From the IMG/VR virus record IMGVR_UViG_3300027770_001980, positions 62,001-126,000 of that record: a stretch of 64,000 nucleotides of DNA; one strand, 5' to 3'. Every line of letters starts with the position of its first letter. Position 1 is the stretch's first letter. This document shows positions 2,427-31,741 of this stretch, in pieces. The notes below the pieces were generated by a model, which saw only the letters and a program-made list of their open reading frames with translations, was not told where the DNA came from and made no database searches. The translations under genes were made by a program, and so were the position numbers.

Positions 2427-2923
2427 AGATAGTTAAATTTCCCGACGCTATACTACGTAAGAGTATGCCAGCATTTGATTTCAATAATCCCGTCATGGAT
2501 CCAGTCAAACTTGAAACAGACATGATTGACGCTATGCTGGCATTAGATGGTATAGGTCTTGCTGCTAATCAAGTGGGTATTGAAACCCGTGTGTTTGTTA
2601 TGGGACACAGAGATAATCCAGACGCAGCACAGGCATTCTTCAATCCGGTTGTTACTGATAATACAGAAGATATTGCCGATATGGAGGAAGGCTGCTTGAG
2701 TTTTCCTGGAATCTATGTTAAAGTTAAGAGACCTACAAAAATCAAAGCACGTTGGCAGAACAGCCAGGGTGAATTTGAGGAAGGTGAGTTTGATGGATAT
2801 AACTGTAAGTGCTTCTTACACGAATACGACCATCTTGAAGGAATCGTGTTCCAAGATAGAGTTAGCACTCTGAAATGGGCCATGGCAGTAAAGAAAACTA
2901 AACAAAAGAGAAAACACAAATAA
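2423..2923 (+). CDS. def: Peptide deformylase
   Basis: All three PDF motifs: GIGLAANQ, EGCLS, HEYDH. Confidence 0.95.
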   Translation: MKIVKFPDAILRKSMPAFDFNNPVMDPVKLETDMIDAMLALDGIGLAANQVGIETRVFVMGHRDNPDAAQAFFNPVVTDNTEDIADMEEGCLSFPGIYVKVKRPTKIKARWQNSQGEFEEGEFDGYNCKCFLHEYDHLEGIVFQDRVSTLKWAMAVKKTKQKRKHK

Positions 2924-16849: not shown

Positions 16850-17457
16850 TGCGTATCAATGAACTACTTGAAAGTGCAGGTGATTTACCAAGCGATCCCG
16901 GTCCTAGAGAATTTATTAGTAATAAATTTCATGTTAAATTTACCAACGATGCTCTTTTAGTTTACGATGGCGGTGAACTTGTTTATAAAAGGCCAGGAAA
17001 TTTCTCAAACCCAACTAGGCAAAATGCGTCAAATGCAAAAGGTGTCACTAATACCCTGTGGAGGGCTAAACACGATCCAGCATATAAAAATCTAGCCAGT
17101 TCTCCTTACTTGGTTATAAAACCAAGTGACGTTCATAAAGCAGCCGACAAAAAAGGTATACCGTGGGATAAAGATAGGAAATTTTTTAATTTATCAAAAA
17201 AACTAACAGGTAAAGGTCATTTAGATAACATGACCCCAGAAGAACTTAGAATAATGTTTGATTACTTAACTAAGATAAAAGTTAGAGAAAACTTTGCTGA
17301 CGGTCGGCATCCTGAGGATAAGGGCGACTCAAAGCGTTATCATGTTCCTACCAAAGGTAGTGTCAGTAGTTTGAGAAAGTTTGCTAAAAATCATTCAGGT
17401 CGGGCAGCACAATTGGCACACTGGGCTGCCAATATGAAAGCAGGTAAAAAGAAATAA
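16849..17457 (+). CDS. Hypothetical modular protein with CTS-like N-terminus (MRINEL)
   Basis: Start refined to the ATG overlapping the previous TAA (TAATG at 16847-16851); C-terminal module begins VRE-NFADG. Confidence 0.65.
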   Translation: MRINELLESAGDLPSDPGPREFISNKFHVKFTNDALLVYDGGELVYKRPGNFSNPTRQNASNAKGVTNTLWRAKHDPAYKNLASSPYLVIKPSDVHKAADKKGIPWDKDRKFFNLSKKLTGKGHLDNMTPEELRIMFDYLTKIKVRENFADGRHPEDKGDSKRYHVPTKGSVSSLRKFAKNHSGRAAQLAHWAANMKAGKKK

Positions 17458-17999
17458 TGTTTAATTTTATAAAATATGTAGTTGAAGGCAAAGAGATCAA
17501 AACACTCGAACAAGTGAAGTTATCCTATGCCCGTGATGCTCTGGAACCTGTACTAAGTGAAGATGCTATAGATTATCATTATGGCAAACTATATAAAACT
17601 TATGTTAATCGCTACAACAATGGCGAAGGTGATCCAGACTTCAACGAAGCCGGTGCATTCTTACACAGTATGTATTTTCCACAATTACAAGTTCCAGACG
17701 AAACCAATGATCCATTCGGTGCATCTAAAGAGTTTATTGATCAACATTGGAAATCATTTGAAAACTTTAAAGAAGAATTTACCAAAGTTGCTATGGCCAT
17801 ACAAGGTAGCGGATGGGTCTATCTTGCTCGTAATGGTGAGATCAAAACCATTGTCAATCACCAAATCAAGAATGATATCATACTGCTGATAGATTGGTGG
17901 GAGCATGCCTTTAATATCGATTATCTTGCAGACAAGAAAGGTTATCTAACTAACCATTGGAAAATCATCAACTGGAATTTAATTAACGAGAGATTATAA
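17457..17999 (+). CDS. sod: Fe/Mn superoxide dismutase (compact)
   Basis: DALEP, YHYGKLYKTY, FLH, QGSGW and DWWEHA; the four metal ligands (H, H, D, H) are present. Confidence 0.88.
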   Translation: MFNFIKYVVEGKEIKTLEQVKLSYARDALEPVLSEDAIDYHYGKLYKTYVNRYNNGEGDPDFNEAGAFLHSMYFPQLQVPDETNDPFGASKEFIDQHWKSFENFKEEFTKVAMAIQGSGWVYLARNGEIKTIVNHQIKNDIILLIDWWEHAFNIDYLADKKGYLTNHWKIINWNLINERL

Positions 18000-18686: not shown

Positions 18687-21356
18687 ATGTCATATGTTGA
18701 CGCAATGTGGGATCGCGACAAAGATGTCGTTAAAGTCGTTGAACGCGATCCAAAAAAAGGAAGAATATTTCAGGAATATCCTGCCAAATATATCTTTTAT
18801 TATCTTGACCCCAAGGGCAAGTATAAATCAATCCACGGTGAAAGTCTTAGTAAAGTCACTTGTAGAAATAACAAGGACTTCCAGAAAGAACTCCGTATCC
18901 ATGGCGATCGTAAACTTTACGAAAGCGATATCAAACCAGCATTCCGCTGTTTAGAAGATAACTATCTCGGTGCAGATGCACCCAAACTTCATGTGGCGTT
19001 TTTCGACATTGAGGTGGACTTTGATCCCGAGCGTGGCTATAGCACCCCAGAAGATGCTTTCATGCCAATCACTGCGATCGCTGTTCACCTACAATGGTTA
19101 GACACACTGGTATGTTTTGCTGTTCCACCGAAGACGCTGACAATGGAACAAGCCAAGGAACAAGTCAAAGACTTTCCTAATACTATATTGTTTGAAACAG
19201 AAGCGGAAATGTTAGATGCATTTCTAAATCTAATTGAAGATGCTGATGTATTAAGCGGATGGAATAGTGAAGGATTTGATATTCCTTACACAGTTAATCG
19301 TGTTACCAAAGTATTAAGCAAAGAAGATACACGCAGATTTTGCTTGTGGGATCAATTTCCAAAGAAGAGAGAATATGAGAAATATGGGAAACAGGCTATT
19401 ACTTATGATCTTATTGGTCGCGTTCATTTGGACAGTCTCGAACTGTACCGGAAATATACATACGAGGAACGCCACACCTATAGGCTCGATGCCATCGGAG
19501 AGATGGAGATAGGTGAGAGCAAGACTGTATACGAAGGCACACTTGATCAACTATACAACAAAGACTTCCGCAAGTTTATCGAATACAATAGGCAAGATAC
19601 TGCTCTATTGGACAAGTTAGATAAGAAACTAAAATTCCTGGATCTTGCCAACACACTGGCACATGAATGTACCGTGTTGCTACAGACTACAATGGGTGCT
19701 GTGGCCGTGACGGAACAGGCTATCGTTAATGAAGCACATCACCGTGGACTTATCGTTCCGAGCCGTTTAAAGCGTGATGAAAATGATAACAATCAAGCGG
19801 CAGGTGCTTATGTAGCATATCCTAAAAAAGGTCTACATGACTGGATTGGTAGTATAGATATTAACAGTCTATATCCCAGTGCTATTCGTGCGTTGAATAT
19901 GGGTCCGGAAACAATTGTCGGACAATTAAAACAAACCAACACCGATCAGTTTATCCATGAGCAAATGGTATTGCATAAGAAATCATTTGCGGCTGCGTGG
20001 GAGAACAAATTTGGTAGTGAAGAATACGAAGCAGTGATGCGACAGGATCGTGCTTATGAAGTCACAATTGATTGGGAAAACGGTGAACAGGATATCCTAA
20101 GTGCAGCGGAAGCATATAGACTAATTTATGAAAGTCATAAGCCCTGGATGTTGAGTGCTAATGGTACTATCTTTACACACGAAACAGAAGGTATTATTCC
20201 GGGTTTGCTGGCTCGCTGGTATAGTGAGCGTAAGGATATGCAGAAGAAACTTAAAGCGGCAATTGATGCTGGCAATAAGGTCGAAGAGGAATATTGGGAT
20301 AAACGACAACTGGTCAAGAAGATTAACTTGAACAGTCTGTATGGTGCTATCTTGAATCCGGGTTGCAGATTCTTTGACAAGCGTATCGGACAATCAACTA
20401 CATTAGTAGGTAGACAGATCGCCCGTCATATGGCAGGTAAAGTAAATGAGATCATCACAGGTGAGTTTGACCATGTTGGAAAAGCCATCATCTACGGTGA
20501 CACTGATAGTTGTTATTTTTCCGCATATAACTCTTTGAAGGTTGATATCCAAAAGAAACTTATTCCTTGGGATAAGGATGTGGTGATACAACTGTACGAT
20601 AACATTGCAGATACTGTCAATGATACTTTTCCACAGTTCATGTTAGATGCTTTCCACTGTCCAAAGAGTCGTGGTGCTGTTATCAAAGGTGGGCGTGAAA
20701 TTGTTGCCAGCAAAGGACTGTTCATTACCAAGAAGCGTTATGCTGTATTGTACTATGACAAGGATGGCAAGAGATACGATAGCGAAACTAAACCCGGTAA
20801 GATCAAGGCCATGGGCTTGGATTTGAAGCGTAGCGATACCCCGGAATTTATGCAGAACTTCTTGAGTGAGGTTTTGAATAAAGTGCTGAACGGTTCAGAG
20901 GAAGCAGAGATTTTAGATATGATCAATGAGTTCCGAATCGAATTCAAAGCAAGACCAGGGTGGGAGAAGGGTAGTCCAAAAAGAGCAAATAACATTGCCG
21001 AATACGACGCTGAAGAAAAGAAGAAAGGCAAAACTAATATGCCTGGACATGTCCGTGCCAGTATCAATTGGAATACTCTTAAACGCATGAACGGTGACAA
21101 ATACAGCACCAACATCGTTGATGGTATGAAAGTTATCGTATGTAAGATGAAGGAAAATCCACTTGGGTATACCAGCGTAGCGTATCCGGTCGATGAACTT
21201 CGTTTACCTAAGTGGTTCCAAGAACTACCATTTGATCATGCTGAAATGGAACATGTTATCATCAATAACAAACTGGATAACCTTATCGGTGTTCTGGAAT
21301 GGGATCTCGAATCCACTACACAAACAAATACATTTAATTCGTTATTCAGTTTTTGA
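18687..21356 (+). CDS. Family B DNA polymerase (T4 gp43-like) with 3'-5' exonuclease
   Basis: Exo motifs FFDIEV, GWNSEGFD, YNRQD; Pol motifs DINSLYPS, KINLNSLYG, YGDTDS, KKRY; C-terminal NSLFSF resembles a clamp-binding peptide; no intein-sized insertion. Confidence 0.97.
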   Translation: MSYVDAMWDRDKDVVKVVERDPKKGRIFQEYPAKYIFYYLDPKGKYKSIHGESLSKVTCRNNKDFQKELRIHGDRKLYESDIKPAFRCLEDNYLGADAPKLHVAFFDIEVDFDPERGYSTPEDAFMPITAIAVHLQWLDTLVCFAVPPKTLTMEQAKEQVKDFPNTILFETEAEMLDAFLNLIEDADVLSGWNSEGFDIPYTVNRVTKVLSKEDTRRFCLWDQFPKKREYEKYGKQAITYDLIGRVHLDSLELYRKYTYEERHTYRLDAIGEMEIGESKTVYEGTLDQLYNKDFRKFIEYNRQDTALLDKLDKKLKFLDLANTLAHECTVLLQTTMGAVAVTEQAIVNEAHHRGLIVPSRLKRDENDNNQAAGAYVAYPKKGLHDWIGSIDINSLYPSAIRALNMGPETIVGQLKQTNTDQFIHEQMVLHKKSFAAAWENKFGSEEYEAVMRQDRAYEVTIDWENGEQDILSAAEAYRLIYESHKPWMLSANGTIFTHETEGIIPGLLARWYSERKDMQKKLKAAIDAGNKVEEEYWDKRQLVKKINLNSLYGAILNPGCRFFDKRIGQSTTLVGRQIARHMAGKVNEIITGEFDHVGKAIIYGDTDSCYFSAYNSLKVDIQKKLIPWDKDVVIQLYDNIADTVNDTFPQFMLDAFHCPKSRGAVIKGGREIVASKGLFITKKRYAVLYYDKDGKRYDSETKPGKIKAMGLDLKRSDTPEFMQNFLSEVLNKVLNGSEEAEILDMINEFRIEFKARPGWEKGSPKRANNIAEYDAEEKKKGKTNMPGHVRASINWNTLKRMNGDKYSTNIVDGMKVIVCKMKENPLGYTSVAYPVDELRLPKWFQELPFDHAEMEHVIINNKLDNLIGVLEWDLESTTQTNTFNSLFSF

Positions 21357-21415: not shown

Positions 21416-22150
21416 ATGAAATCTATTCTACAAGACATCGTTGCACACACAAACAAATTGGGCTTTCTTAACATCGTTAAAGTCACAGGCACAGATGAAA
21501 AAACTCTAATCGACAGCATGGCAGATGACCGTAGCGTTATCATGTATGCAGAAACTGCTAACCCACACGCAGACATGATCGGTACATATGGCATGCCGCA
21601 ACTTGAAAAACTACGCTATCTTTTAGATGGTAAGGAATATCAAGATGGTGCTAAGATCGAAGTAGTCACTGCTGAACGCAATGGCGAAACTGTTCCAGTT
21701 GGTCTCCACTTTGAAAACAAAGACGGCGACTTCAAGAATGACTATCGCTTTATGAATCAAGACATTATCAATGAGAAATTGAAAACTGTCAAGTTCCGTG
21801 GCGTCAAGTGGGATGTTGAAGTTGAGCCCACAGTAAATGCTATCCAGCGTTTCCAATTCCAAGCAGGTGCCAACACTGAACATACAACTTTCTTAGCCAA
21901 GACAGATGGCGGCAATTTGAAGTTTACATTTGGCGATGTCAGCAGTCACGGTGGTGAATTTATTTTCTCAACTGGTGTCACAGGAAATCTAAATAAAGGA
22001 TGGACTTGGCCAGTAAACAATGTGTTGAGTATTTTGAAAATCGCAGATGCCAATAACGCAAAGATCAGTTTCAGCAACGAAGGTGCTATGCAGATCACTT
22101 TAGACAGCGGCATTGCCACTTACAAGTATATCATTCCAGCACAAGCATGA
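21416..22150 (+). CDS. Probable DNA polymerase sliding clamp (gp45-like)
   Basis: 244 aa directly after polB; beta-rich, size fits a clamp; C-terminal GAMQITLDSGIATYKYIIPA typical of clamp-fold ends; inferred mostly from context. Confidence 0.6.
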   Translation: MKSILQDIVAHTNKLGFLNIVKVTGTDEKTLIDSMADDRSVIMYAETANPHADMIGTYGMPQLEKLRYLLDGKEYQDGAKIEVVTAERNGETVPVGLHFENKDGDFKNDYRFMNQDIINEKLKTVKFRGVKWDVEVEPTVNAIQRFQFQAGANTEHTTFLAKTDGGNLKFTFGDVSSHGGEFIFSTGVTGNLNKGWTWPVNNVLSILKIADANNAKISFSNEGAMQITLDSGIATYKYIIPAQA

Positions 22151-22521
22151 TAAAGAATGTGTATAGTAGTGGACCATATTTGACGGCTCACAATAACAAT
22201 GCCAGCAACTATGTGAACAACTTTAGCGGAGCACAGGGGCTGGGTAACATGCGATTCAACACCACAACTCAAAGCATAGAAGTGTATGATGGACAGATGT
22301 GGCAACCTTTCCGAATGAGTGATATCGATGTGAGTCTAACACCAGATGCTGTAGATGCCATTGGTTGGGTAAATCAAAAGCGTGTAGAAGAACTTGCAAT
22401 GGAGGCATTAGCATCAACCAATACCGCCGTGAAAATCGCTTTGGACAATTTAAAGAAAGCAAAAGAACAATTAGATGTTACAATAATACTAAGCAAAGAA
22501 CACAATGAATCCACCAGTTAA
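22147..22521 (+). CDS. Hypothetical protein
   Basis: 124 aa, ATGA-coupled; C-terminal coiled coil. Confidence 0.65.
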   Translation: MIKNVYSSGPYLTAHNNNASNYVNNFSGAQGLGNMRFNTTTQSIEVYDGQMWQPFRMSDIDVSLTPDAVDAIGWVNQKRVEELAMEALASTNTAVKIALDNLKKAKEQLDVTIILSKEHNESTS

Positions 22522-24058
22522 CCTGTCACCATTTCAAAGAGACTATGCTGTCTATTTGCCAGCAATCAGCAGTTTCTACAGCACATACATCGCTAAACAA
22601 AGATTAGATGATTTCGTTCCTAAGGATCGTATCCCTAAAGGATTTGATCGTGGTATCGAAGGTATGAACTTCTTAAACGAAGAACAAGGATACTTTACCT
22701 ACAAGTATGGTCTATACTCTGCAGGTCATGCACAGTTAGATATCCAAAAGAGTCTGATACAGGAAAGTATGATACACGGTCGTGATCATGCCAACACTAT
22801 GATATTAGGTGATTCAGGTGGATACCAAATTGGTAAGGGTATTCTCAAATTTGATTGGTTAGACTTTGAAGGCAAGGCAGCAAACAAAACTCGTGATGAT
22901 ATTATCGCTTGGTTAGAACTAACTGCCGATTGGTCAATGATGTTGGATGTGCCTATCTGGGCCTGTGATAAGAACAATCAAGCAAGAACTGGTTTAACAA
23001 GCCCAGAAGATTGTTTACAGAAAACTCGTTTCAATAACGAATACTTCTTGAAGAATCGAATGGGTAAGACCAAGTGGTTGAATGTGTTACAAGGCAGTGA
23101 TTGGCATAGCGCACAGTCTTGGTATGAAGGTGTTAAAGAATTTAGTGACCCTGCTGTATGGGGAGATAAGGCAGCAGAGGGTTGGGCAATGGGTGGTGTT
23201 AATATGAGTAAGATGGACATCACTTTAAAGCGTTTGATGATCATGCGGGAGGAAGGCATGCTCACAGGCAAGAACTGGATCCACTTCTTGGGTACAGCAC
23301 AGTTAGATTGGGCTTGCTATCTAACTTCAATTCAACGACAAATCAGGAAACATATTAATGAAGAAATTACCATATCTTTTGACTGCGCCTCACCGTTTGT
23401 CGCAACAGCACACGGACTCGTTTACACAAACGCAATCCACACATCGAAAAAGTTCAGTGTTGTTATGGAAAAAGCCCCAGACAACAAAGCACTTGCAGGA
23501 AGCGACATCCCATTCCCATTCGAATCAGAAATTGGCCGCAGACTTGTAATGGGTGATATCTGTCACTATGCTCCAGGCATGTTGAACAAGATCAAGAAAG
23601 AAGGCAAGACATCGTGGGATAGTTTCGCCTACTCATTGTATATGGCACATAATGTCCAATGTCATATTGAAGCTGTACAGAGAGCCAATCACTATGCTGA
23701 CATTGAAAGCACACGATTCAAACCAGACTGGCGTTCGTGGAAGAAACTCAACGCTAAAGAACTATCAAGCGATCAGTTTAGCGAATGGGTTCCACGCAAT
23801 GTATTGTATTTCGATCGCTTTGTTGAAGAATTGTTCGATACTAAAACATTAACAGAAGCAATGGACATGTTAGAGCATCCGACTGCCAAAGCATTCTTGA
23901 TCAGTATCGCAGGTGCTCGTAATACAACCAATGGACAGAACGACAACATGTTTGGCGGGTTGTTTGATGTTGAAGAAGTTACACGAGCAGATGAAGTGGA
24001 TCTGTCCGATGCCAATGACTCTGCATTACAGAAATTAAGTGACGATCTTGGAGAGTAA
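22505..24058 (+). CDS. tRNA-guanine transglycosylase-fold protein, DpdA-like (7-deazaguanine insertion)
   Basis: TGT motifs in order: GDSGGYQ, MLDVP, VLQG, AMGG, HFLGT, SFDCASP; neighbours are QueD-like and QueE genes; canonical CxCxxC zinc cluster not seen. Confidence 0.8.
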   Translation: MNPPVNLSPFQRDYAVYLPAISSFYSTYIAKQRLDDFVPKDRIPKGFDRGIEGMNFLNEEQGYFTYKYGLYSAGHAQLDIQKSLIQESMIHGRDHANTMILGDSGGYQIGKGILKFDWLDFEGKAANKTRDDIIAWLELTADWSMMLDVPIWACDKNNQARTGLTSPEDCLQKTRFNNEYFLKNRMGKTKWLNVLQGSDWHSAQSWYEGVKEFSDPAVWGDKAAEGWAMGGVNMSKMDITLKRLMIMREEGMLTGKNWIHFLGTAQLDWACYLTSIQRQIRKHINEEITISFDCASPFVATAHGLVYTNAIHTSKKFSVVMEKAPDNKALAGSDIPFPFESEIGRRLVMGDICHYAPGMLNKIKKEGKTSWDSFAYSLYMAHNVQCHIEAVQRANHYADIESTRFKPDWRSWKKLNAKELSSDQFSEWVPRNVLYFDRFVEELFDTKTLTEAMDMLEHPTAKAFLISIAGARNTTNGQNDNMFGGLFDVEEVTRADEVDLSDANDSALQKLSDDLGE

Positions 24059-24059
24059 T

Positions 24060-24566
24060 ATGAATAGAGAAGGACACGAAAACGCAGAATTTTTCTACGG
24101 TACAGAAGTAGAACATACACCAGCATTTGGAATGCCCACATTGTTTGTGGTTGGCGTTCAAAAAGAAGAACGGATCGGGCATCGCATAAATGGACGGCGT
24201 CATATCTATTTTGGTGCCAATCAAAGTTTTCCCAATCCAAATATAAATGATGCTGAGGCATGGAAACCCTGGGAAGACATGATTCGATGCTTTCTCGATC
24301 GAGACTATCTATGTACCCTGGATATAGATGTCAAATGCGCTGAAGGATTGTTGGAAAGTGGACTTTGTGAATATCATAATTTCATTCCAATGATTTCGGT
24401 GAAATTGCCCTATTTACAACAGTTGGGATATAATGCTATAATTAAACTTGACGACAAAGACTTCAAGTCAACTAACCCCGGTGTGTGGTGTCACAACCTA
24501 CACAATTTATTAACTCGTGAGACCTTTACAGATTGGTCTAAATATACGAAAGATGAAGTATTATAA
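24060..24566 (+). CDS. Hypothetical protein linked to the DpdA-like gene
   Basis: Start refined to ATG 24060; motifs FFYGTEVEHTPA, HIYFGANQSF, NPGVWCH. Confidence 0.7.
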   Translation: MNREGHENAEFFYGTEVEHTPAFGMPTLFVVGVQKEERIGHRINGRRHIYFGANQSFPNPNINDAEAWKPWEDMIRCFLDRDYLCTLDIDVKCAEGLLESGLCEYHNFIPMISVKLPYLQQLGYNAIIKLDDKDFKSTNPGVWCHNLHNLLTRETFTDWSKYTKDEVL

Positions 24567-25120
24567 TGGTAAAAAGAATTTCAGTTGGAACACAGTTACC
24601 AGAAAAAAGACATGACAATGATCATGGATTTATAGTAGAAGATATAATGGAAGCTCTCGGTAACAAAGTCGATCGAGTTGGGACGGTGGATCTTCCAAAA
24701 TACGACAGAGATATAAAAACTCACGATATTTTTAGTGATGCATCTTGGACTGTAGGATCAATAACTATAGAAAATATGGATCGTCAAAAATGGAAAAATA
24801 CTTCTATATTTAAAAAAGTTCAGGTTCAAGAACAAGTTGAAATTAACACAGTTTTTAATCATGTACAAAAAGCCCGCAAAATAGATATGCGTGATGAAGA
24901 GGTACAAAGAAAATTTAAAGAAGATTATAAACATATTCGAAAAGAAATTCAGGACGGATCATCGTCTAAAAATATAACAGGACCAAACGGATACTTTGTA
25001 GGTGATAGATACGGACATGAAAATTCTGTTAAAATTAGAATACCACATTCTACAATGAAGAAAATTATTAGTATATCTAATACTAAAAAACAACGTAAAA
25101 AATTATTTGAAGAGGTATAA
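24566..25120 (+). CDS. Putative PD-(D/E)XK (MutH/Sau3AI-like) endonuclease, possibly a free-standing homing endonuclease
   Basis: GFIVE...VDLPKYDRDIKT fits E...D-x(n)-[D/E]xK; visibly AT- and Lys-richer than flanking genes. Confidence 0.45.
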   Translation: MVKRISVGTQLPEKRHDNDHGFIVEDIMEALGNKVDRVGTVDLPKYDRDIKTHDIFSDASWTVGSITIENMDRQKWKNTSIFKKVQVQEQVEINTVFNHVQKARKIDMRDEEVQRKFKEDYKHIRKEIQDGSSSKNITGPNGYFVGDRYGHENSVKIRIPHSTMKKIISISNTKKQRKKLFEEV

Positions 25121-25123
25121 CTA

Positions 25124-25510
25124 ATGAACAATGATTTATCAATGATATGGGTGAGATTTCAGAAGGAAGGAATCCATTGCTACCCTGCTGCCGCAACTGA
25201 TCCTATGTTAGCCACAGGCGACGAATATGATGTCAGTTTCCTCGCAACACCACATAGACACATTTTCCATTTTCAAGTCAATATTCAAGTATTTGATGAT
25301 GATCGTGACATTGAATTTATCCAGTTTAAGCGTTGGCTCGAAAAGTGCTATAGCAATGGTACTCTTGAACTCAACCATAAATCTTGTGAAATGATTGCTC
25401 GTGAACTTAATACGACAATCACTGCAAGGTATCCGGGTCGACAGACCCTTATCAGTGTAAGCGAAGACGACGAAAACGGCGCTTCAATTATATTCCGTAA
25501 TCAACCCTAA
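25124..25510 (+). CDS. queD: QueD-like 6-carboxy-tetrahydropterin synthase (T-fold)
   Basis: GIHCY, HRHIFHF, SCEMIA and C-terminal VSEDDENGA resemble the PTPS/QueD fold. Confidence 0.7.
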   Translation: MNNDLSMIWVRFQKEGIHCYPAAATDPMLATGDEYDVSFLATPHRHIFHFQVNIQVFDDDRDIEFIQFKRWLEKCYSNGTLELNHKSCEMIARELNTTITARYPGRQTLISVSEDDENGASIIFRNQP

Positions 25511-25526
25511 TATTAGGAAACACAAA

Positions 25527-25763
25527 ATGGCACAGCCAAACTATATTCAAAAAACCCTTAAAATGAAACCCGAGGTATCTAAGATCTTTGATGATCTTGA
25601 TGCTTGGATAGATCATTGCCGGTTTAATCTTCTTCCCTACAATGAGAAGGATCTTTATCGATCCAATGACTATCGTAGGTTCCAGCAAGAGCAAGAATAT
25701 CTACAACGCAAAGCTCGTCGTGAAGCATCGGGTAAACCCCAACGTGAATATCAGGACCAATAA
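25527..25763 (+). CDS. Hypothetical protein
   Basis: 78-aa ORF with AGGA SD. Confidence 0.65.
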   Translation: MAQPNYIQKTLKMKPEVSKIFDDLDAWIDHCRFNLLPYNEKDLYRSNDYRRFQQEQEYLQRKARREASGKPQREYQDQ

Positions 25764-26938
25764 TGCGTAAACTATATTACATGGGGCTTGAACCCTACAA
25801 AGCAAGGTACACTCTGCAATTGCAAGAGTGGAATACTAGTGTGTTTGATAAAAGAGGCATCGATTATGTTGTTGTGCCCGGGGAAACACTTAGTAATGAC
25901 CAAGCAATTGTAACAGGTCAAGTATTAGATGCACATGGTCGTACATACTACGGTATGAGCCAACTGATGAACTTGATCCGCATGATGAAAGCAGGAGAAC
26001 TAAACCATGAAGATGTTATCTATTTTGAGGACATGTTTCAGCCCGGCATCGAGAGCCTGCCTTATATTATGGATCAAATTGATCCTGGCCTTCGTCCCCG
26101 TATTTTTGTGCGGTGTCTTGCTCAGTCCATTGATCCTGATGATTTCGTTCATGTGTGGGGAATGGCGGGATGGATGGGACACTACGAGAAAATGGTGGAT
26201 AGCTTTGTTAGCGGTGTTTTGGCCACCAATGAGGAAATGGTAGCACACATGAAGATTGCAGGTTGGAAGGCTCCGATCTACAATATCTCAGGCTTGGCAT
26301 TTGGCAAAGCAGAAGTTCAGAGTCGTGTGGCCAGTATCCGACCATTCCATTCACGCAAACATCGTGTGGTGTTCTCGGCACGATGGGATCAGGAGAAACA
26401 ACCTGACTTCTACATGGACTTGATTGAAGCATGGAATGACCAACCAGGATTGGAACCGGTTGAGTTCTGTGTGTGCAGTGGTGGTAAACTAAAATCAAAT
26501 AGTGATAGCTATATGCAACGCACTCGTGACTTGGTTGCACGAGGATTGCTAACAATCTACGAGGATTTAGAAAAGAATGAATACTACAACATTGTTAATG
26601 ATAGTCGGGTTGTATTTAACTGTGCGTTACAAGATTGGGTTTCAAACACAGTCAGTGAGGCTGATGCACTCGGATGCAATGTGCTATACCCTGCTTATCG
26701 TAGCTTCCCTGAAACTTTTGCCAATGACCATACTCGTCTGTATGTGCCTTGGAGCATCGGCGATGCTATGGATAAGTTGGAATCGTTATTGGACACACCA
26801 CATCCAAACATGGGCGCAATCAGCGACTACAACGACGGAACAATCGACCGAATCATTGACATCTTGCAAGGCGACGGAGAAGACCTGTTGCGTATGAGCA
26901 CTGACTACAGAAAATACACCCGTGAATCAAAATACTAA
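25763..26938 (+). CDS. GT-B fold glycosyltransferase (GT4/phage glucosyltransferase-like)
   Basis: VVFSARWDQEKQPD, FNCALQDWVSNTVSEADALGCNVLYPAYRSFPE (GT4-like E-x7-E-type region). Confidence 0.75.
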   Translation: MRKLYYMGLEPYKARYTLQLQEWNTSVFDKRGIDYVVVPGETLSNDQAIVTGQVLDAHGRTYYGMSQLMNLIRMMKAGELNHEDVIYFEDMFQPGIESLPYIMDQIDPGLRPRIFVRCLAQSIDPDDFVHVWGMAGWMGHYEKMVDSFVSGVLATNEEMVAHMKIAGWKAPIYNISGLAFGKAEVQSRVASIRPFHSRKHRVVFSARWDQEKQPDFYMDLIEAWNDQPGLEPVEFCVCSGGKLKSNSDSYMQRTRDLVARGLLTIYEDLEKNEYYNIVNDSRVVFNCALQDWVSNTVSEADALGCNVLYPAYRSFPETFANDHTRLYVPWSIGDAMDKLESLLDTPHPNMGAISDYNDGTIDRIIDILQGDGEDLLRMSTDYRKYTRESKY

Positions 26939-27932
26939 ACGAGTAATCATAACAGGTGCGATGGGCTTTATCGGTAGTCATACCGCTAAGGCCTTTCAGC
27001 GAGCTGGCTATTATGTAATTGGCATTGACCGTGCATTGACTATTCCAGACGCCGCAAGATTTCTCAATGAAATGATCATAGATGATTTTGTTGACATTGC
27101 TGCAAAAGTTGCCAAAATAAACAACATCAACACTATCATACATATTGCAGGAACCAGTTTAGTTGGTCCCAGCATTGATAATCCTGGTGAATACTACAAT
27201 AATAATGTTGCCAAGACTAATCTTATGTTAGATGAACTGTCTCAACAGGGGTGGAAAGGCACTATTATATTCAGCAGCAGTGCAGCGACATATGGTAATG
27301 AATGTAGTGTTCCTATCGTTGAAGAGGCACAGGGTATTCCAGTCAGTCCATATGGGCACAGTAAGAAAATGTGTGAATATGTTATTGAAAGTCATTCACA
27401 TGCATACGGACACAAAGGCATCGCATTGAGATATTTCAATGCATGTGGATGTGACCCAGATAATGAACTTGGTAACAATTGGGATGATACACATTTAATT
27501 CCCAGAGTAGTTCAAAGTGCATTAGAGAGAACTACATTGACTATCAATGGTAATGATTTTCCAACCAATGATGGAACCTGTATAAGAGATTATCTACATG
27601 TATCAGACATAGCAGATGCTCATGTTAAGGCTGTAGAACTTGCTAATAAACTCGACAGTGGCATATTTAAAGCATATAATTTAGGAACAGGTGTAGGCAT
27701 AAGCAATCTTGAAATAGTACAGGCTGTATCTAATGCAGGACTTAAAGTTGATTATAAATTTGGTCCAAAGAGATTCGGTGATCCAGCTGAGTTGATTGCC
27801 AATCCAACACAGTTTATGTCTAATACAGGATGGGATCCTAAATATAGTAAATTAGAAACTATTGTATCCACTACTGTTAAATGGATGGAAAATTTAGATA
27901 TTCAAATTATAAAAGCAGAATTTATTGCTTAG
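26922..27932 (+). CDS. galE: UDP-glucose 4-epimerase / NDP-sugar epimerase
   Basis: TGAMGFIGSH Rossmann motif, FSSSAATYG, SPYGHSK (YxxxK), LRYFNACG, RDYLHVSDIADAH. Confidence 0.92.
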   Translation: MNQNTKRVIITGAMGFIGSHTAKAFQRAGYYVIGIDRALTIPDAARFLNEMIIDDFVDIAAKVAKINNINTIIHIAGTSLVGPSIDNPGEYYNNNVAKTNLMLDELSQQGWKGTIIFSSSAATYGNECSVPIVEEAQGIPVSPYGHSKKMCEYVIESHSHAYGHKGIALRYFNACGCDPDNELGNNWDDTHLIPRVVQSALERTTLTINGNDFPTNDGTCIRDYLHVSDIADAHVKAVELANKLDSGIFKAYNLGTGVGISNLEIVQAVSNAGLKVDYKFGPKRFGDPAELIANPTQFMSNTGWDPKYSKLETIVSTTVKWMENLDIQIIKAEFIA

Positions 27933-28827
27933 TGAATTTCATTATCTTTTGATCTCTTTTTGAAACACAGGATATCATTGTACATTGATCAGGTTCAGTT
28001 GGCAATTTCAATCTGTTAAGATTGCTTTGTTGTTTTTCAGCATCTGAAAATAATTCTTTGATATTTGTCCATATATTTCCCAAAGGTTTATTGTTACAAT
28101 CACTGCCTGATACCCAACCCAAGTGAGAAATATTTAAAGACTCAATTCCAGTATTGCATAAAATTCCTGTATAACTAGGATTTGAACTATAGGTATCTTT
28201 ATATCGTTGATCATGTGTTGTTGATTTAAAGTATTTTTGTTCACTAACTAACTCTTCTCCGCGAATTATTCTTAATTGTTTTTCTGTATAAGGAAACATT
28301 CCACCAACAGTCGATGCATGATTATACAAGATACATTTGCTCACAGATATTCCAAATTCATTTTCTACCTCTAATGCGCGAGCCATGTCATCATCAAAGA
28401 AATCAGGACGAATTGGAACCATAACATTTATTTCTTTTTCTTTTTTTTGAAATAATTGTATAATAAACCTGATAAGAGGGTATTGTTGCCAATAATGATA
28501 TGTTAAATGCAATACTGTTACTCGAGTTTCCATTGCCCACCAATCAACCCAAAGTTTTCCACCATTTGTGTGTAACTCGATTCTTCCATCATTTTCATTG
28601 CACACTCTGAGTAAGACAGGAAAATCAATGAGATCCAACGGTTCACCCCCGTTGAAAGTCCAATGTACTGTTCTCCCTAAAGACCGATAATGAGAAATAA
28701 TCTCCAAAGCAACTGCCGTGTATTCTCCAATGCTATGTTCTAAAAGCCCTCCTCTAATTTGCGAGGGACAATAGGAACATTCAGAAGTACAATGGTTGTG
28801 TAAATTCCATACTACATCGGTGATCAT
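27922..28827 (-). CDS. Radical SAM protein (antisense to surrounding genes)
   Basis: CTSECSYC (CxxxCxxC), FNGGEP, HTNG; C-terminal Cys (CNTG, GSDC, CTMISC) suggests a SPASM/twitch-like domain. Confidence 0.85.
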   Translation of the reverse strand: MITDVVWNLHNHCTSECSYCPSQIRGGLLEHSIGEYTAVALEIISHYRSLGRTVHWTFNGGEPLDLIDFPVLLRVCNENDGRIELHTNGGKLWVDWWAMETRVTVLHLTYHYWQQYPLIRFIIQLFQKKEKEINVMVPIRPDFFDDDMARALEVENEFGISVSKCILYNHASTVGGMFPYTEKQLRIIRGEELVSEQKYFKSTTHDQRYKDTYSSNPSYTGILCNTGIESLNISHLGWVSGSDCNNKPLGNIWTNIKELFSDAEKQQSNLNRLKLPTEPDQCTMISCVSKRDQKIMKFTKQ

Positions 28828-28842
28828 TTTTTCTAAATAGTG

Positions 28843-28870
28843 TTGACTTTTCTAAATACAAGTGTATAAT
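28843..28870 (+). promoter_or_regulatory. sigma70-type promoter for queE
   Basis: TTGACT (28843-28848), 16 bp, TATAAT (28865-28870). Confidence 0.65.
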
Positions 28871-28888
28871 TACTTATCGAGGATTAAT

Positions 28889-29734
28889 ATGTCAAAGATT
28901 AAGATAGCAGAACTTTTCTACTCTATACAGGGCGAGGGTAGATATATGGGGGTGCCCAGTGTGTTCCTTAGAACTTTTGGATGTAATTTCCGCTGTGCAG
29001 GCTTCGGTATGCCGCGGGGAGAACTAAGTGAAGAAGCCAATAATATCAATCCGATAGAATTTAAAACATATAACGAACTCCCGCTTGTTAGCACAGGATG
29101 TGATAGTTATGCCAGTTGGGATCCACGTTTTAAAGATCTCAGTCCACTACTTACTACAGATGCTATTGCCGACGCCATTGTGGATACACTACCGTACAAA
29201 GAATGGCGTGACGAACATCTTGTAATCACAGGTGGCGAGCCTTTGTTGGGTTGGCAACGTGCTTATCCAGATTTGCTCGATCATCCCAAGATGGCAGGAC
29301 TTAAAGAAATTACATTTGAAACAAATGGCACTCAGAAACTTGACCCCAGATTCTATGAGTTTCTAAAAGCATGGCGTAACGATTCTCCTATTGAAAGAGA
29401 AATCACATTCTCGGTAAGTGCTAAACTTCCTTGCTCAGGTGAGAAGTGGGATGAAGCAATCTTACCCAAGGTTGTTTGTGAATACGAAGAAGTTGGCACA
29501 GCATATCTAAAGTTTGTTATTGCTAACGAACAAGACTTTGCAGATGCAGAATGTGCTATTGCCGCGTATCGTCGTCCAGGATTTAAAGGACATGTTTATC
29601 TAATGCCAGTAGGCGGTGTGGAAAGTGTCTATACGATGAACAATCGTAATGTAGCATTGTTGGCAATGAAACACGGACTACGCTACAGTGATCGACTCCA
29701 AGTGCCACTGTTTAAGAACGAGTGGGGAACTTAA
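28889..29734 (+). CDS. queE: 7-carboxy-7-deazaguanine synthase (radical SAM)
   Basis: ELFYSIQGEGRYMGVPSVFLRTFGCNFRC...GCDS, VITGGEP, FETNG, SDRLQ; start refined to ATG 28889 after GAGG. Confidence 0.93.
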   Translation: MSKIKIAELFYSIQGEGRYMGVPSVFLRTFGCNFRCAGFGMPRGELSEEANNINPIEFKTYNELPLVSTGCDSYASWDPRFKDLSPLLTTDAIADAIVDTLPYKEWRDEHLVITGGEPLLGWQRAYPDLLDHPKMAGLKEITFETNGTQKLDPRFYEFLKAWRNDSPIEREITFSVSAKLPCSGEKWDEAILPKVVCEYEEVGTAYLKFVIANEQDFADAECAIAAYRRPGFKGHVYLMPVGGVESVYTMNNRNVALLAMKHGLRYSDRLQVPLFKNEWGT

Positions 29735-29831: not shown

Positions 29832-30092
29832 ATGCCCATGGATGATTTAACAGATGTAGTATCGCAATCACATCGATCTACAGATTGGGGGATACATTTT
29901 GTTAATAATTGGCATCTACATTTCTGCTTATTGCCAAGAAGGTGCCTCTTTACTGACAAGACAATCTGGTTTGAGAAATGTTATAAAGGCAGTAGATCAA
30001 TTGAAGGGTTAGCCGGAGAGAAACCTCTCGTTGTAGAATACTACATAGACAAGTTTGAATTTATAAAATGGAATTTAAAGGGAAAACCATGA
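29832..30092 (+). CDS. Hypothetical protein
   Basis: Start refined to ATG 29832; FCLLPRRC...IWF pattern. Confidence 0.6.
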   Translation: MPMDDLTDVVSQSHRSTDWGIHFVNNWHLHFCLLPRRCLFTDKTIWFEKCYKGSRSIEGLAGEKPLVVEYYIDKFEFIKWNLKGKP

Positions 30093-30685
30093 ATATTACA
30101 CCGTTGTTTGCCATACCCGTTGGTATTTCTAATATCGGAAGAGCGTGGACTGAAGAAGAAATATCATTTTTTAAAAATTTAGAACTACATGGAAATGTAG
30201 GAAATAAGGTTTCTGTTAATAAAAAAGTATTAGAACACTTAGAAGATATAAAAGGTTTTATATTAAATTCCGTTAAGCGTTATGTAGAAACAACTGATCC
30301 ATTACCAGATGATATAGAAATATATATAACACAATCGTGGATAAATCTTACAGAGGAAAAAGAATATCATCACGCTCATACTCATCCTAACAGCATAATA
30401 AGTGGAGTACTTTATATAAACGCCGATAGAGAGGTTGATAAAATAGTGGTTCATAATGAAAGAAGAAAAAGAATTCTTAAATATAAACCAGTCAGTTGGA
30501 ATCCATTTAATAGTGAAGTATGGCGTTTTAATGTTGGTACTGGAGACCTAATAATGTTTCCTTCGGAACTTAAACATGAAGTTGAAAATAAAGTTGGAAG
30601 TAATTTCCGAGTGAGTTTATCCTTTAACACATTTTTAAAAGGTAAGATTGGAGATGAACACGAATTGACAGAATTAATATTATAA
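30089..30685 (+). CDS. 2OG-Fe(II) oxygenase (TIGR02466-like)
   Basis: SWIN...HHAHTHPNSIISGVLY, FPSELKHEV, RVSLSFN; ATGA-coupled start at 30089. Confidence 0.85.
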   Translation: MNITPLFAIPVGISNIGRAWTEEEISFFKNLELHGNVGNKVSVNKKVLEHLEDIKGFILNSVKRYVETTDPLPDDIEIYITQSWINLTEEKEYHHAHTHPNSIISGVLYINADREVDKIVVHNERRKRILKYKPVSWNPFNSEVWRFNVGTGDLIMFPSELKHEVENKVGSNFRVSLSFNTFLKGKIGDEHELTELIL

Positions 30686-30695
30686 AGAGAATACC

Positions 30696-31130
30696 ATGAT
30701 TGAATTTATTAAAAAAATGTTTAGTGGCAACAATAAAGAAGCAGTATTCGCGGCTCCCAAGTTGTCCGAACCAACGGTAAATCCGGAAATACCAAAAGAG
30801 AAGAAACCACGCAAACCAAAAAAAGTAGTCGAATTATCTCCAAAAGAAGCAGCAACCAAACGTGGTGAACCCTGGGTAGCGGTTTTGGATACTCATGTAA
30901 ACAAAGATAATATTCGTAATGGCTTCTTTGAACTTGACTGGAATGAGTTTTTTGTGCTACAATTACGAAGCAATGGGTTTCAAGGTGAAACCGAAGAAGC
31001 CGTTGTTGACCAATGGTTCCAGGAACTATGTAGAAATATCGGAAGTGAAGCGGATATTAATATGGACCGAAGAGGTAGCGGTTTTATTAATGTCAATAAT
31101 TTAGGTAATGGAAAATCGGAGATTTCATAA
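30696..31130 (+). CDS. Hypothetical protein
   Basis: 144 aa; EPWVAVL...GFFELDWNE...VDQWF. Confidence 0.7.
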   Translation: MIEFIKKMFSGNNKEAVFAAPKLSEPTVNPEIPKEKKPRKPKKVVELSPKEAATKRGEPWVAVLDTHVNKDNIRNGFFELDWNEFFVLQLRSNGFQGETEEAVVDQWFQELCRNIGSEADINMDRRGSGFINVNNLGNGKSEIS

Positions 31131-31741
31131 TGAATTTGTCAACTGATAGTTCTGATTATGATGTGTTATATCGTGCTGCGGCTTCTATTAAAGATATAGA
31201 TGGCGCTATTTGCGAGATTGGTACACGCCTCGGTGGGAGTTTGCAATATATTGTTGAAGGTCTATTGGCAGCAAATGATCTAAATCGCAATGTTGTTTGT
31301 TTAGATCCATATGGAAATATTGATTTCTACGATAGCGAATATAGTAAATCCAAATCTGATTACACTAATGATATGCGTAATACTGCGATGGCAAATATTT
31401 ACGAATATCTAAAAGATAAACCCGTTAATGTAGTATTATTGTGTTTAGAAGATAAGGAATACTTTAATAGATTCCAAGACGGATTTCCTTTCTATCAAGA
31501 GCATAAACAAATCGTCAATCAATATAGTCTTGTTTTCTTCGACGGCCCCCACGTGAGTAATTCAGTTCTTGAAGAAATTCAATTTTTCTATCCAAGATCT
31601 GTAGTAGGTACAAAATTTGTATTTGACGATATCAACAAATATAATCATCAACCCATACACGACAATTTAATCAGTAATGATTTCCAACTTATCAATTTTG
31701 GTAACAATCAAGTCAAATCCTGCTATATTAAAATCAAATGA
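31130..31741 (+). CDS. Class I SAM-dependent methyltransferase (Methyltransf_24/TylF-like)
   Basis: CEIGTRLGGS motif I, VFFDGPH, FVFDD. Confidence 0.8.
   Translation: MNLSTDSSDYDVLYRAAASIKDIDGAICEIGTRLGGSLQYIVEGLLAANDLNRNVVCLDPYGNIDFYDSEYSKSKSDYTNDMRNTAMANIYEYLKDKPVNVVLLCLEDKEYFNRFQDGFPFYQEHKQIVNQYSLVFFDGPHVSNSVLEEIQFFYPRSVVGTKFVFDDINKYNHQPIHDNLISNDFQLINFGNNQVKSCYIKIK

Follow-up and report, generated by a model that had tools for sequence, protein, structure and literature searches.

A 64,000-nucleotide stretch of IMG/VR record IMGVR_UViG_3300027770_001980 (positions 62,001 to 126,000, hereafter the window), originating from a freshwater jumbo phage, encodes a family B DNA polymerase and a probable sliding clamp followed by a set of genes for replacing guanine in DNA with 7-deazaguanine (Table 1). 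All of the genes named in a preliminary description, which had been made from the sequence alone, lie at the stated coordinates on the plus strand, and the genes from 22147 to 27932 overlap or abut on one strand. The observation of a TGT/DpdA-like gene after polB and the clamp, followed by a QueD-like gene, a GT-B glycosyltransferase (GT), GalE and QueE, is therefore confirmed. That description did not mention the 175-, 184- and 78-aa ORFs or the minus-strand radical SAM gene between GalE and QueE.

Table 1. Features of the deazaguanine gene cluster and its flanks (positions within the window), with occurrence in related loci (of 80: IMG/VR loci chosen by similarity to the GT; of 53: loci carrying both the TGT-like gene and QueE, window included)
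Position	Strand	Length (aa)	Assignment	Occurrence
18687..21356	+		Family B DNA polymerase (context anchor)	
21416..22150	+	244	Probable sliding clamp (context anchor; identity not confirmed)	
22147..22521	+	124	ORF overlapping both neighbours, function unknown	40 of 80
22505..24058	+	517	TGT/DpdA-superfamily transglycosylase, divergent subfamily; predicted to insert the deazaguanine base	75 of 80
24039..24566	+	175	Conserved unknown	15 of 53
24566..25120	+	184	Basic ORF (pI 9.45), unknown, poorly conserved	4 of 80
25124..25510	+		DpdL (QueD paralog; proposed CDG decarboxylase)	78 of 80
25527..25763	+	78	ORF always found between DpdL and the GT in this lineage, function unknown	43 of 53 (same position)
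25763..26938	+		Virus-restricted GT-B (GT4-like, retaining-type) glycosyltransferase	
26922..27932	+		UDP-glucose 4-epimerase GalE (accessory sugar-nucleotide enzyme)	12 of 53
27922..28827	-		Radical SAM protein, function unknown (lineage-specific insertion)	1 of 80
28862..29734	+		QueE-like 7-carboxy-7-deazaguanine synthase	
30068..30685	+		2OG-Fe(II) oxygenase (possible tailoring enzyme; not conserved)	2 of 80
31130..31741	+		Methyltransferase, Methyltransf_24 / TylF-like (possible tailoring enzyme; not conserved)	1 of 80

Gene identities within the cluster

The polymerase matches PF00136 (3.2e-36) and PF03104 and is about 50% identical to the polymerase of Pseudomonas jumbo phage PA5oct (Wroclawvirus). 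The clamp candidate has no Pfam hit; it is 34% identical to PA5oct EST35_0314 and has the same position and size as the annotated sliding clamp of phage Phosso. The 517-aa protein returned no Pfam, NCBIfam, PHROG or PDB sequence match; it is nevertheless a tRNA-guanine-transglycosylase (TGT/DpdA) fold with the catalytic Asp motifs intact. An alignment of 49 family representatives showed invariant D103-S104-G106 (DSGGxQ), near-invariant D148 and invariant D293 (FDCASP, the TGT nucleophile motif). The AF2 model (pLDDT 91.9) gave TGT, QTRT1 or ArcTGT as all of its top 21 PDB fold matches (E 6.5e-7 to 1e-4). The protein is 40% identical to PA5oct EST35_0316, and profile alignment with hhalign gave 96-97% probability to ACP17-type DpdA but only 72% to DpdA3; it belongs to a divergent, unnamed subfamily.

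The gene previously described as QueD-like is DpdL, a QueD paralog rather than QueD itself. Its LATPHRHIF segment matches the published DpdL signature LxxxHRHxF (PMC10516641), tblastn comparison gave 58% identity to DpdL of phage ACP17 and 35% (E 2e-6) to DpdL of Cellulophaga phage phiST, and hhalign to the QueD family gave 92.6% probability; the protein also matches phrog_17812. DpdL is the proposed decarboxylase that converts 7-carboxy-7-deazaguanine (CDG) to 7-deazaguanine. The QueE-like protein matches phrog_2076 (5e-52) and, below the cut-off, TIGR03365 (1e-16); its only PDB hits are CDG synthases (QueE), and it is 49% identical to the annotated QueE of phage BUCT-ZZ01. GalE matches TIGR01179 at 297.8 bits, above the cut-off of 262.3, with GxxGxxG and YxxxK motifs present.

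The GT carries the invariant donor motifs RxxxEKQ and D/E-x7-E as well as the family-specific N-domain motifs LEPxxxRYT and SxDPxDF. Its AF2 model (pLDDT 76.5) has MshA and BshA as best PDB fold hits (E about 1e-11, TM about 0.6), the best viral fold hits include the ACP17 GT, and matches to PF13524 and PF00534 are weak. At the sequence level, the GT is 65.5% identical to the BUCT-ZZ01 GT, which lies in that phage's deazaguanine cluster.

Of the remaining ORFs, the 175-aa protein has a homolog just upstream of DpdA in ACP17 (L083:8239-8724; BLASTP 33% identity, E 2e-17), whereas Pfam, PHROG and NCBIfam searches gave no family hit for the 184-aa ORF. The radical SAM protein matches PF04055 at 2.3e-6, below the cut-off, and belongs to viral radical-SAM clusters. 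Downstream of QueE, the oxygenase matches PF13759 (3.3e-21) and TIGR02466, and the methyltransferase matches PF13578 (5.8e-8) and, weakly, PF05711. The absence of FolE, QueC and QueF from the window, as previously stated, holds as far as examined: family HMMs for FolE, QueD and the phosphoribosyltransferase found nothing in any window ORF of 50 aa or more, and Pfam scans of most of the larger ORFs gave no FolE, QueC or QueF. The related clusters were not searched for QueC. No queuosine-forming genes (QueA, QueG, QueH, QueC, QueF) were found.

Co-occurrence of the glycosyltransferase with deazaguanine genes

Failure of the GT and DpdA to co-occur in related genomes had been named in advance as an outcome that would refute a glycosylated deazaguanine base; the comparison instead showed that the GT family co-occurs with the deazaguanine genes in every related locus examined and in several unrelated cultured phage lineages. 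Of 80 IMG/VR loci chosen by the GT, 78 have DpdL and 75 have the TGT-like gene, with most misses at contig ends. Additionally, 7 of 7 MAG contigs, with GT identities from 21 to 74%, have DpdL directly upstream and a TGT-like gene. Among cultured phages, the GT lies beside DpdL and a TGT-like gene in PA5oct, ACP17, BUCT-ZZ01, X1/BUDD and BCSR5, and beside DpdL in Phosso, giving six further lineages from different virus families. Every full-length tblastn hit of three GT queries across 50,697 phage records is a DpdL-bearing phage, and among 185,579 species genomes the N-domain motifs occur in only 7 contigs, all MAGs, and are absent from cellular isolate genomes. The GT is more conserved than polB in the IMG/VR loci (median identity 81% against 58%), although selecting these loci by similarity to the GT inflates its apparent conservation; the GT, DpdL and QueE are the most conserved genes in the locus.

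Sugar-nucleotide genes are embedded in the same clusters. Between the GT and QueE, relatives carry FolE (46 of 53 loci), QueD (42), an RfaE-II/TagD-like nucleotidyltransferase (33), a kinase-like protein (15), GalE (12) and a DegT aminotransferase (5), with the sugar-activating genes located between FolE and QueD.

Comparison with characterized systems highlights both shared and distinct features. The DpdA3/DpdL system of phiST (Cui, Hutinet et al., NAR 2023; PMC10516641) likewise has QueE, DpdL with the LxxxHRHxF signature, a divergent TGT-like transglycosylase and no QueC, and lies next to the replication genes; however, phiST has a short (259 aa) DpdA3, a MazG, a P-loop ATPase and no GT, whereas the window encodes a 517-aa transglycosylase of another subfamily together with an inserted GT4-like enzyme and GalE. 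The PA5oct block is syntenic (polB, clamp, TGT-like, GT-like, DpdL at 55% identity, then QueE), and its deazaguanine system was predicted computationally (PMC7824862), but it has a distant GT paralog (about 22% identity), a half-length epimerase-like gene and a phosphoribosyltransferase, and no GalE. In T4-type and other 5-hmC / 5-hmU glycosylation systems, a GT-B enzyme using an NDP-sugar is also encoded beside base-modification genes and related phages carry varying sugar-tailoring genes, but those enzymes act on a hydroxymethyl pyrimidine in DNA, whereas the base here is a purine analogue with no known hydroxyl; T4 alpha-GT and beta-GT are not among the top 50 structural matches, and a cyanophage DNA alpha-GT ranks only 40th in the viral library. 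In eukaryotic tRNA, mannosyl- and galactosyl-queuosine provide a case in which a GT-B enzyme (QTMAN is GT4-type) decorates a 7-deazaguanine derivative inserted by a TGT; there, the acceptor is the cyclopentenediol of queuosine, while the target here is presumed to be DNA. A bacterial QTMAN-like cluster appeared among language-model look-alikes, which is a lead only. MshA and BshA share R/K and E-x7-E donor-site motifs with the GT, but are cellular thiol-biosynthesis enzymes with inositol-phosphate or malate acceptors, whereas the phage family has its own N-terminal acceptor domain motifs.

A possible sugar-bearing deazaguanine

The preliminary description had inferred that the phage may install CDG or preQ0 and then add a GalE-derived sugar, and this interpretation is partly supported by the present results. 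The GT is not a chance neighbour, its donor-site motifs are intact and a sugar step is tied to the pathway; no paper in the searched library reports a glycosylated deazaguanine in DNA. However, the likely precursor is the DpdL product, proposed to be 7-deazaguanine, rather than CDG or preQ0, and GalE is accessory, with relatives carrying other sugar-activating enzymes instead.

The favoured reading, held tentatively with a probability of roughly 0.45, is a DpdL-type 7-deazaguanine DNA-modification module of a PA5oct-like freshwater jumbo phage in which a virus-specific, retaining-type GT4-like glycosyltransferase is a built-in part. In this view, FolE and QueD, encoded elsewhere in the genome or supplied by the host, would provide CPH4, which QueE would convert to CDG and DpdL, by published proposal, would decarboxylate to 7-deazaguanine. 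The GT would then use an NDP-hexose to attach a sugar to the deazaguanine moiety, either on the free base before insertion or on the base once in DNA, with GalE interconverting UDP-Glc and UDP-Gal in this phage and an RfaE-II/TagD-like nucleotidyltransferase, a kinase-like protein or a DegT aminotransferase present instead in relatives. Finally, the 517-aa TGT/DpdA-like enzyme would exchange guanine in phage DNA for the modified base, protecting the DNA from restriction. The gene identities, folds, motifs and conserved co-location were demonstrated by this analysis, whereas every chemical step, the acceptor atom, the donor sugar and the presence of a sugar in virion DNA are inferences; no chemistry was tested, and no chemical data exist for this phage or for any GT-bearing relative. 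Experimental hints come from PA5oct, whose DNA resists restriction at G-containing sites and is sensed as modified G, with the base not yet identified (PMC12191111), and from ACP17, whose DpdA plus DpdL expressed without the GT gave no dDG in E. coli (PMC10516641). A difficulty is that 7-deazaguanine has no hydroxyl group, so an ordinary O-glycosylation has no obvious acceptor, and the reaction would need C- or N-glycosylation, an ester on CDG, or a still unknown hydroxylated intermediate. The closest solved structures are small-molecule GTs rather than DNA glucosyltransferases, which fits base-level glycosylation but does not show it. Also against this reading, FolE and QueD are missing from the window, and DpdL phages lacking the GT make plain dDG (phiST); phage VP1, whose DpdL and GT content was not examined here, also has only 7-deazaguanine. 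DpdL therefore does not need the GT, and phiST DpdA plus DpdL also failed in E. coli although phiST has no GT.

The leading alternative, considered unlikely, is that the final base is plain 7-deazaguanine (dDG) or another unglycosylated derivative and that the GT acts only transiently or indirectly, for example by glycosylating a pterin or CDG intermediate, much as cellular GT4 enzymes glycosylate small molecules, or by helping to form or deliver the base. The structural neighbours (the GT4 and GT20 enzymes MshA, BshA and OtsA) agree with this, as does the high conservation of the GT, DpdL and QueE, which is expected for enzymes acting on fixed small molecules. Furthermore, dDG is the proven product of the GT-less phiST cluster, and DpdA plus DpdL alone failed to give dDG in E. 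coli, where the authors suggested that other enzymes may be required. Against this alternative, phiST makes dDG without any member of this GT family. Additionally, the sugar-activating and sugar-tailoring genes vary between close relatives (GalE, DegT, RfaE-II-like and a second GT in BUCT-ZZ01), a pattern more typical of a displayed, diversifying glycan than of a transient intermediate.

Incorporation of the modified base before replication is also unlikely; here, a phosphoribosyltransferase and kinases would convert the free base to a (deoxy)nucleotide incorporated by polB, with the TGT-like and GT proteins acting on nucleotides rather than on DNA. An XGPRT-like phosphoribosyltransferase lies in the clusters of PA5oct, BUCT-ZZ01 and 4 of 7 MAG loci, P-loop kinase-like genes are found in relatives and in phiST (together with a MazG in phiST), and the cluster sits directly beside polB and the clamp. 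However, the window has no phosphoribosyltransferase or kinase of those families, the phosphoribosyltransferase is equally well explained as salvage of the guanine released by base exchange, all studied DpdA relatives act by base exchange on polynucleotides (PMC10516641), and the TGT catalytic residues are conserved. Least likely is that the GT and GalE modify host surface polysaccharide, virion proteins or another target and only happen to lie within an early or replication gene block. Phage GT4-like enzymes and GalE are common in surface-glycan and moron contexts (PMC7824862), GalE is not conserved in the cluster, and an outgroup GT in Xanthomonas phage PhiXhv-12 lies in a GlmS/deacetylase sugar context with no deazaguanine genes. 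The adjacency of the GT and DpdL across cultured lineages and metagenomic loci, the lack of any full-length family member among phages without DpdL in the records searched, and the placement of sugar-activating genes between FolE and QueD all argue against this reading. With a virus-only sugar-transferring enzyme located inside the deazaguanine gene set here and in at least six other phage lineages, these phages may make an undescribed sugar-bearing purine in DNA.

Identities of the enzymes in the deazaguanine block

Within the window, eight ORFs on the + strand overlap or abut one another, and a radical SAM gene on the opposite strand separates them from a further + strand ORF, which is QueE-like. 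Upstream of the block lie a family B DNA polymerase (PF00136 and PF03104) and a 244-aa ORF without a Pfam match, which is homologous to PA5oct EST35_0314 and occupies the position where phage Phosso has an annotated sliding clamp. Downstream of the QueE-like gene are a 2OG-Fe(II) oxygenase, a TylF-like methyltransferase and a FEN/RNase H. The genes named in the preliminary description were found, although one of them required a new identity (see below). A megablast of the region against 50,697 phage records returned no match, and a promoter and terminator scan gave counts no higher than in shuffled sequence.

Features of the window and of related loci, with their coordinates
Location	Strand	Feature	Remarks
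window:5-586	+	ORF at the window start	Matches an autotransporter beta-domain (PF03797, 2.5e-11), unusual for a phage
window:630-1196		3TM holin-like ORF	Follows the preceding ORF
window:1605-5205	+	Chaperone and proteostasis block encoded by the phage	DnaJ (1605-2426), peptide deformylase (2423-2923) and ClpB-like double AAA+ protein (2923-5205)
window:16067-17999	+	dCMP deaminase domain fused to DUF6321 (16067-16849) and Fe/Mn superoxide dismutase (17457-17999)	Just upstream of the polymerase
window:22147-27932	+	Eight ORFs	124 aa; 517 aa (TGT/DpdA-like); 175 aa; 184 aa; 128 aa (DpdL); 78 aa; 391 aa (GT); 336 aa (GalE)
window:27922-28827	-	Radical SAM gene, 301 aa, function unknown	Between GalE and the QueE-like gene; belongs to virus-only radical SAM clusters
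window:28862-29734	+	QueE-like ORF, 290 aa	
window:34198-36627	+	MoxR-type AAA ATPase followed by DUF2201 metallopeptidase/VWA protein	A known two-gene pairing
window:35638-35712		Faint tblastn hit of BUCT-ZZ01 QueD	Lies in the DUF2201 metallopeptidase/VWA gene; rejected as a QueD
window:37838-38716		Thymidylate synthase	
window:38759-39334		HNH/NUMOD3 homing-endonuclease-like ORF	
window:41611-42588		Tail-collar-domain protein	Near the giant ORF
window:43267-58176	-	Single giant ORF, 4969 aa	Followed by ORFs of 1127 aa and 599 aa, the latter with weak gp5-spike/DUF2345 matches; probably a tail or fibre module
L001:7093-7554 (BUCT-ZZ01 locus)		XGPRT-like phosphoribosyltransferase	Inside the deazaguanine cluster
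L002:13946-14380 (PA5oct locus)		XGPRT-like phosphoribosyltransferase	Inside the deazaguanine cluster; recurs in MAG loci L096-L099
L084:7385-8766 (phiST locus)		MazG-like NTP pyrophosphohydrolase and P-loop (AAA_18) ATPase flanking DpdL	The ATPase occupies the slot that the GT fills in ACP17 and PA5oct
L088:7188-8369 (Vibrio phage Bakedbeans locus)		DpdL fused to an N-terminal domain of about 270 aa, function unknown	The domain matches neither the 517-aa family nor phiST DpdA3 by hhalign

The 517-aa protein had no Pfam or NCBIfam hit at E <= 0.01, the curated TGT model PF01702 included, and no PHROG match; single-sequence searches of the PDB with this protein and with the 128-aa protein gave only chance hits. 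The protein belongs to a very large metagenomic family, with 6,360 of the 8,000 scored candidates significant and 861 clusters at 50% identity. In 49 diverse representatives, the invariant columns include D103-S104-G106 (DSGGxQ) and D293 (within FDCASP), and D148 is conserved in at least 90% of them, corresponding to the catalytic motifs of TGT. No conserved Cys cluster that could form the CxCxxC...H zinc site of canonical TGTs appears among the invariant columns. A family profile recovered only TGTs as a coherent set in the PDB, weakly (E about 0.4) but in register, with DSGG placed on TGT Asp102; the fold was therefore settled by an AF2 model (pLDDT 91.9), for which the top 21 Foldseek PDB hits are all bacterial TGT, human or mouse QTRT1, or archaeal ArcTGT (E from 6.5e-7 to 1e-4). 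An hhalign comparison to ACP17-type phage DpdA spans both motifs with 96-97% probability, whereas the relationship to phiST DpdA3 is only weak (72% probability). Combined, these results place the protein in a divergent subfamily of the TGT/DpdA superfamily; exchange of guanine in DNA, rather than tRNA, for a 7-deazaguanine base was not assayed, and only the genomic association with QueE and DpdL was seen. The closest cultured homolog is PA5oct EST35_0316 (40% identity), which lies in the same position after polB and the clamp.

The 128-aa protein, called QueD-like in the preliminary description, is DpdL, a QueD paralog. Its sequence reads ...FLATPHRHIFHF..., in which LATPHRHIF agrees exactly with the LxxxHRHxF signature that Cui, Hutinet et al. 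give for DpdL in place of the CxxxHGH of QueD (PMC10516641). By tblastn, the protein is 58% identical to ACP17 DpdL and 35% identical to phiST DpdL (E 2e-6), and the DpdL family aligns to the QueD family by hhalign with 92.6% probability (E 4e-7), although Pfam PTPS itself gave no hit. Those authors propose that DpdL decarboxylates CDG to 7-deazaguanine in phage phiST, whose DNA is fully dDG; this activity was not measured here and has not been demonstrated in the literature either.

The 336-aa protein is a UDP-glucose 4-epimerase, GalE, scoring 297.8 bits on TIGR01179 (above the equivalog cut-off of 262.3) and carrying the cofactor and catalytic motifs GxxGxxG (GAMGFIG) and YxxxK (YGHSK). The QueE-like protein matches phrog_2076 at 5e-52, is 49% identical to the annotated QueE of cyanophage BUCT-ZZ01, and in the PDB hits only CDG synthases, through the segment E.F.S.QGEG...P..F.R..GC. 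On the other side, NCBIfam QueE models are hit at 1e-16 but far below their cut-offs, and the third cluster Cys follows an insert of roughly 34 residues, leaving its agreement with the curated QueE models and radical-SAM core undecided. The radical SAM gene preceding it was found in only one (L042) of the 80 related loci.

The 391-aa glycosyltransferase (GT) has a predicted two-Rossmann GT-B fold (AF2 pLDDT 76.5), with 366 PDB matches at E <= 0.001; the top 50 listed are glycosyltransferases, including trehalose- and sucrose-phosphate synthases and glycogen synthase, led by the retaining GT4 enzymes MshA and BshA. Residues R207, E211, K212 and Q213, together with Q290 and E299, are invariant across members sharing 19-94% identity, whereas position 291 is D in the window subgroup and E elsewhere. 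The donor-site R207...K212 pair and the D/E291-x7-E299 motif are kept even across relatives sharing only 19-24% identity, as are the family-specific N-domain motifs LEPxxxRYT and SxDPxDF. The window protein does not pass a Pfam gathering threshold (18.6 bits on PF13524 against a cut-off of 25), while among 27 relatives 13 match PF13524 and 11 match PF00534 at E <= 0.01. Known phage DNA glycosyltransferases of the T4 alpha-GT/beta-GT type are not among the top 50 PDB matches, and a cyanophage 'DNA alpha-GT' ranks 40th in BFVD; kinship to DNA-acting enzymes is neither supported nor dismissed by these rankings, and the acceptor was not identified from sequence or model. Whole-protein pI did not discriminate DNA-binding from small-molecule GTs, because polB and the TGT-like protein are acidic too.

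HMMs built from 61 FolE sequences, 46 QueD sequences, and the phosphoribosyltransferase, nucleotidyltransferase and kinase families of related loci found nothing in the window, and Pfam scans of most of its larger ORFs showed no QueC or QueF. This phage must encode FolE and QueD elsewhere or use those of the host. Further along the window, GC content drops from about 0.41 to about 0.33 and the coding strand switches at about 40 kb.

Co-occurrence of the glycosyltransferase with deazaguanine genes

Whether the GT travels with DpdA-type genes in related genomes had been put forward beforehand as a point on which the proposed sugar step could fail, and the association was found. IMG/VR contains at least 599 relatives of the GT; among the best 80 loci, 78 have DpdL, 75 have the TGT-like gene and 55 have QueE within 10 kb, with most misses at contig ends. 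In the 52 of these loci carrying both the TGT-like gene and QueE, plus the window (53 in all), the usual order is TGT-like, small ORF, DpdL, 78-aa ORF, GT, FolE, an RfaE-II/TagD-like sugar- or polyol-phosphate nucleotidyltransferase, (kinase-like), QueD, QueE. The counts are FolE 46, nucleotidyltransferase 33, QueD 42, kinase-like 15, GalE 12 and DegT aminotransferase 5; sugar-activation genes are thus interleaved with the deazaguanine genes. Within the 80 loci, the GT is more conserved (median 81% identity) than DpdL (70%), QueE (68%), polB (58%) and the TGT-like gene (38%), although the loci were chosen by GT similarity and the comparison is biased in favor of the GT. IMG/VR scans with single distant GTs found only ACP17 itself (ACP17 GT query) or nothing (second BUCT-ZZ01 GT).

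A scan of 185,579 species genomes for the N-domain motifs of the family returned seven contigs, all MAGs. All seven carry DpdL directly upstream of the GT and a TGT-like gene; six have FolE, four have QueE and four have a phosphoribosyltransferase.

Among cultured phages, the GT family sits beside DpdL, and usually a TGT-like gene, in several lineages: PA5oct-like jumbo phages; Acidovorax phage ACP17 (order DpdA, GT, DpdL, QueE); Synechococcus phage BUCT-ZZ01, which has two GT paralogs, one of them 65.5% identical to the window GT although the phage is a T4-like cyanophage; Xanthomonas phages X1 and BUDD; Burkholderia phage BCSR5; and Sinorhizobium phage Phosso, where the GT sits beside DpdL but the homolog of the 517-aa gene lies about 170 kb from that cluster. 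A tblastn search with three divergent GTs against the 50,697 phage records returned full-length hits only in DpdL-bearing phages, the only other hits being partial matches to an outgroup GT that lies in a GlmS/deacetylase context. Conversely, 11 of the 29 DpdL-bearing records have no member of this GT family, including phiST, whose DNA carries plain dDG.

A possible sugar-bearing deazaguanine in phage DNA

Combined, these results identify the module with high confidence as a 7-deazaguanine DNA-modification system of the DpdL type, to which the GT is functionally tied. Systems of this type, DpdL and dDG are already published (PMC10516641), and Iyer et al. had noted a deazaguanine synthesis and incorporation system in PA5oct. 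What is new is a dedicated, virus-restricted GT4-like glycosyltransferase with variable sugar-nucleotide helpers, which distinguishes a large subgroup of these systems from the GT-less dDG systems. Full-text searches found no report of a glycosylated 7-deazaguanine in DNA and no report of a GT role in these clusters; a search on DpdL returned mostly unrelated acronyms, and the PA5oct omics paper says nothing about DNA modification.

The most economical reading is that the GT puts a sugar on the deazaguanine moiety, and a sugar-bearing deazaguanine as the end product is held tentatively, at a probability of about 0.45. The interpretation in the preliminary description, a glycosylated deazaguanine DNA base, is therefore supported in part; the genes, their motifs and their conserved arrangement come from the analysis itself, whereas the sugar step is inferred from them. 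The sugar could be added to the free base before TGT-like insertion, which is mildly favored by the small-molecule GT4 neighbors in structure space, and eukaryotic TGT enzymes accept bases with bulky 7-substituents such as queuine; it could also be added on DNA after insertion. The main weakness is chemical: 7-deazaguanine has no hydroxyl, the acceptor atom has not been identified, and the options are C7 or N-glycosylation, an ester on CDG, or an unknown hydroxylated intermediate. The sequencing runs holding the window are freshwater metagenomes represented only by contigs, with no nanopore run listed among them, and miscalls at G were not examined at the read level. Observations from relatives are consistent with this reading but not specific: PA5oct DNA resists several G-containing restriction sites and is targeted by nucleases that sense modified G, while its base is unidentified (PMC12191111), and ACP17 DpdA plus DpdL without the GT gave no dDG in E. 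coli (PMC10516641).

Other readings were weighed against the same observations. The XGPRT-like phosphoribosyltransferase that recurs in the clusters of relatives, and is absent from this window, can be read as salvage of the guanine released by base exchange, although this is an inference and the enzyme could instead make a deazapurine nucleotide, a sign of a nucleotide-level route. The GT was also considered as a cyanobacterial-type pterin glucosyltransferase; no such sequence was compared, but the N-domain motifs of the family are absent from cellular isolate genomes, leaving this as only a minor part of the alternative in which the GT acts transiently or indirectly in the pathway.

Implications for phage DNA hypermodification

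The gene set occurs in freshwater metagenomes worldwide and the family is abundant, with at least 8,000 significantly scoring candidates in each of two GT searches, and several cultured hosts are available. It is possible, though less likely than not, that these phages, including the cultured phages PA5oct, ACP17, BUCT-ZZ01, Phosso, X1/BUDD and BCSR5, carry a glycosylated 7-deazaguanine in their DNA, made by a dedicated virus-only GT4-like enzyme acting with DpdL and a TGT-like insertase. The linkage might be an unusual C- or N-glycosidic bond, because 7-deazaguanine lacks a hydroxyl, and the sugar may vary between lineages. Sugar decorations are so far known on pyrimidines (5-hmC, 5-hmU, 5-hydroxycytosine); this would be the first sugar-hypermodified purine described in DNA, and a sugar on a 7-deazapurine would open a new chemical class. 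It could also explain both the unidentified modified G of the therapeutic jumbo phage PA5oct and the failure to reconstitute dDG from ACP17 DpdA plus DpdL alone. Phage DNA hypermodifications supply enzymes for biotechnology, and they determine which restriction, CRISPR and glycosylase defenses a phage escapes or triggers.
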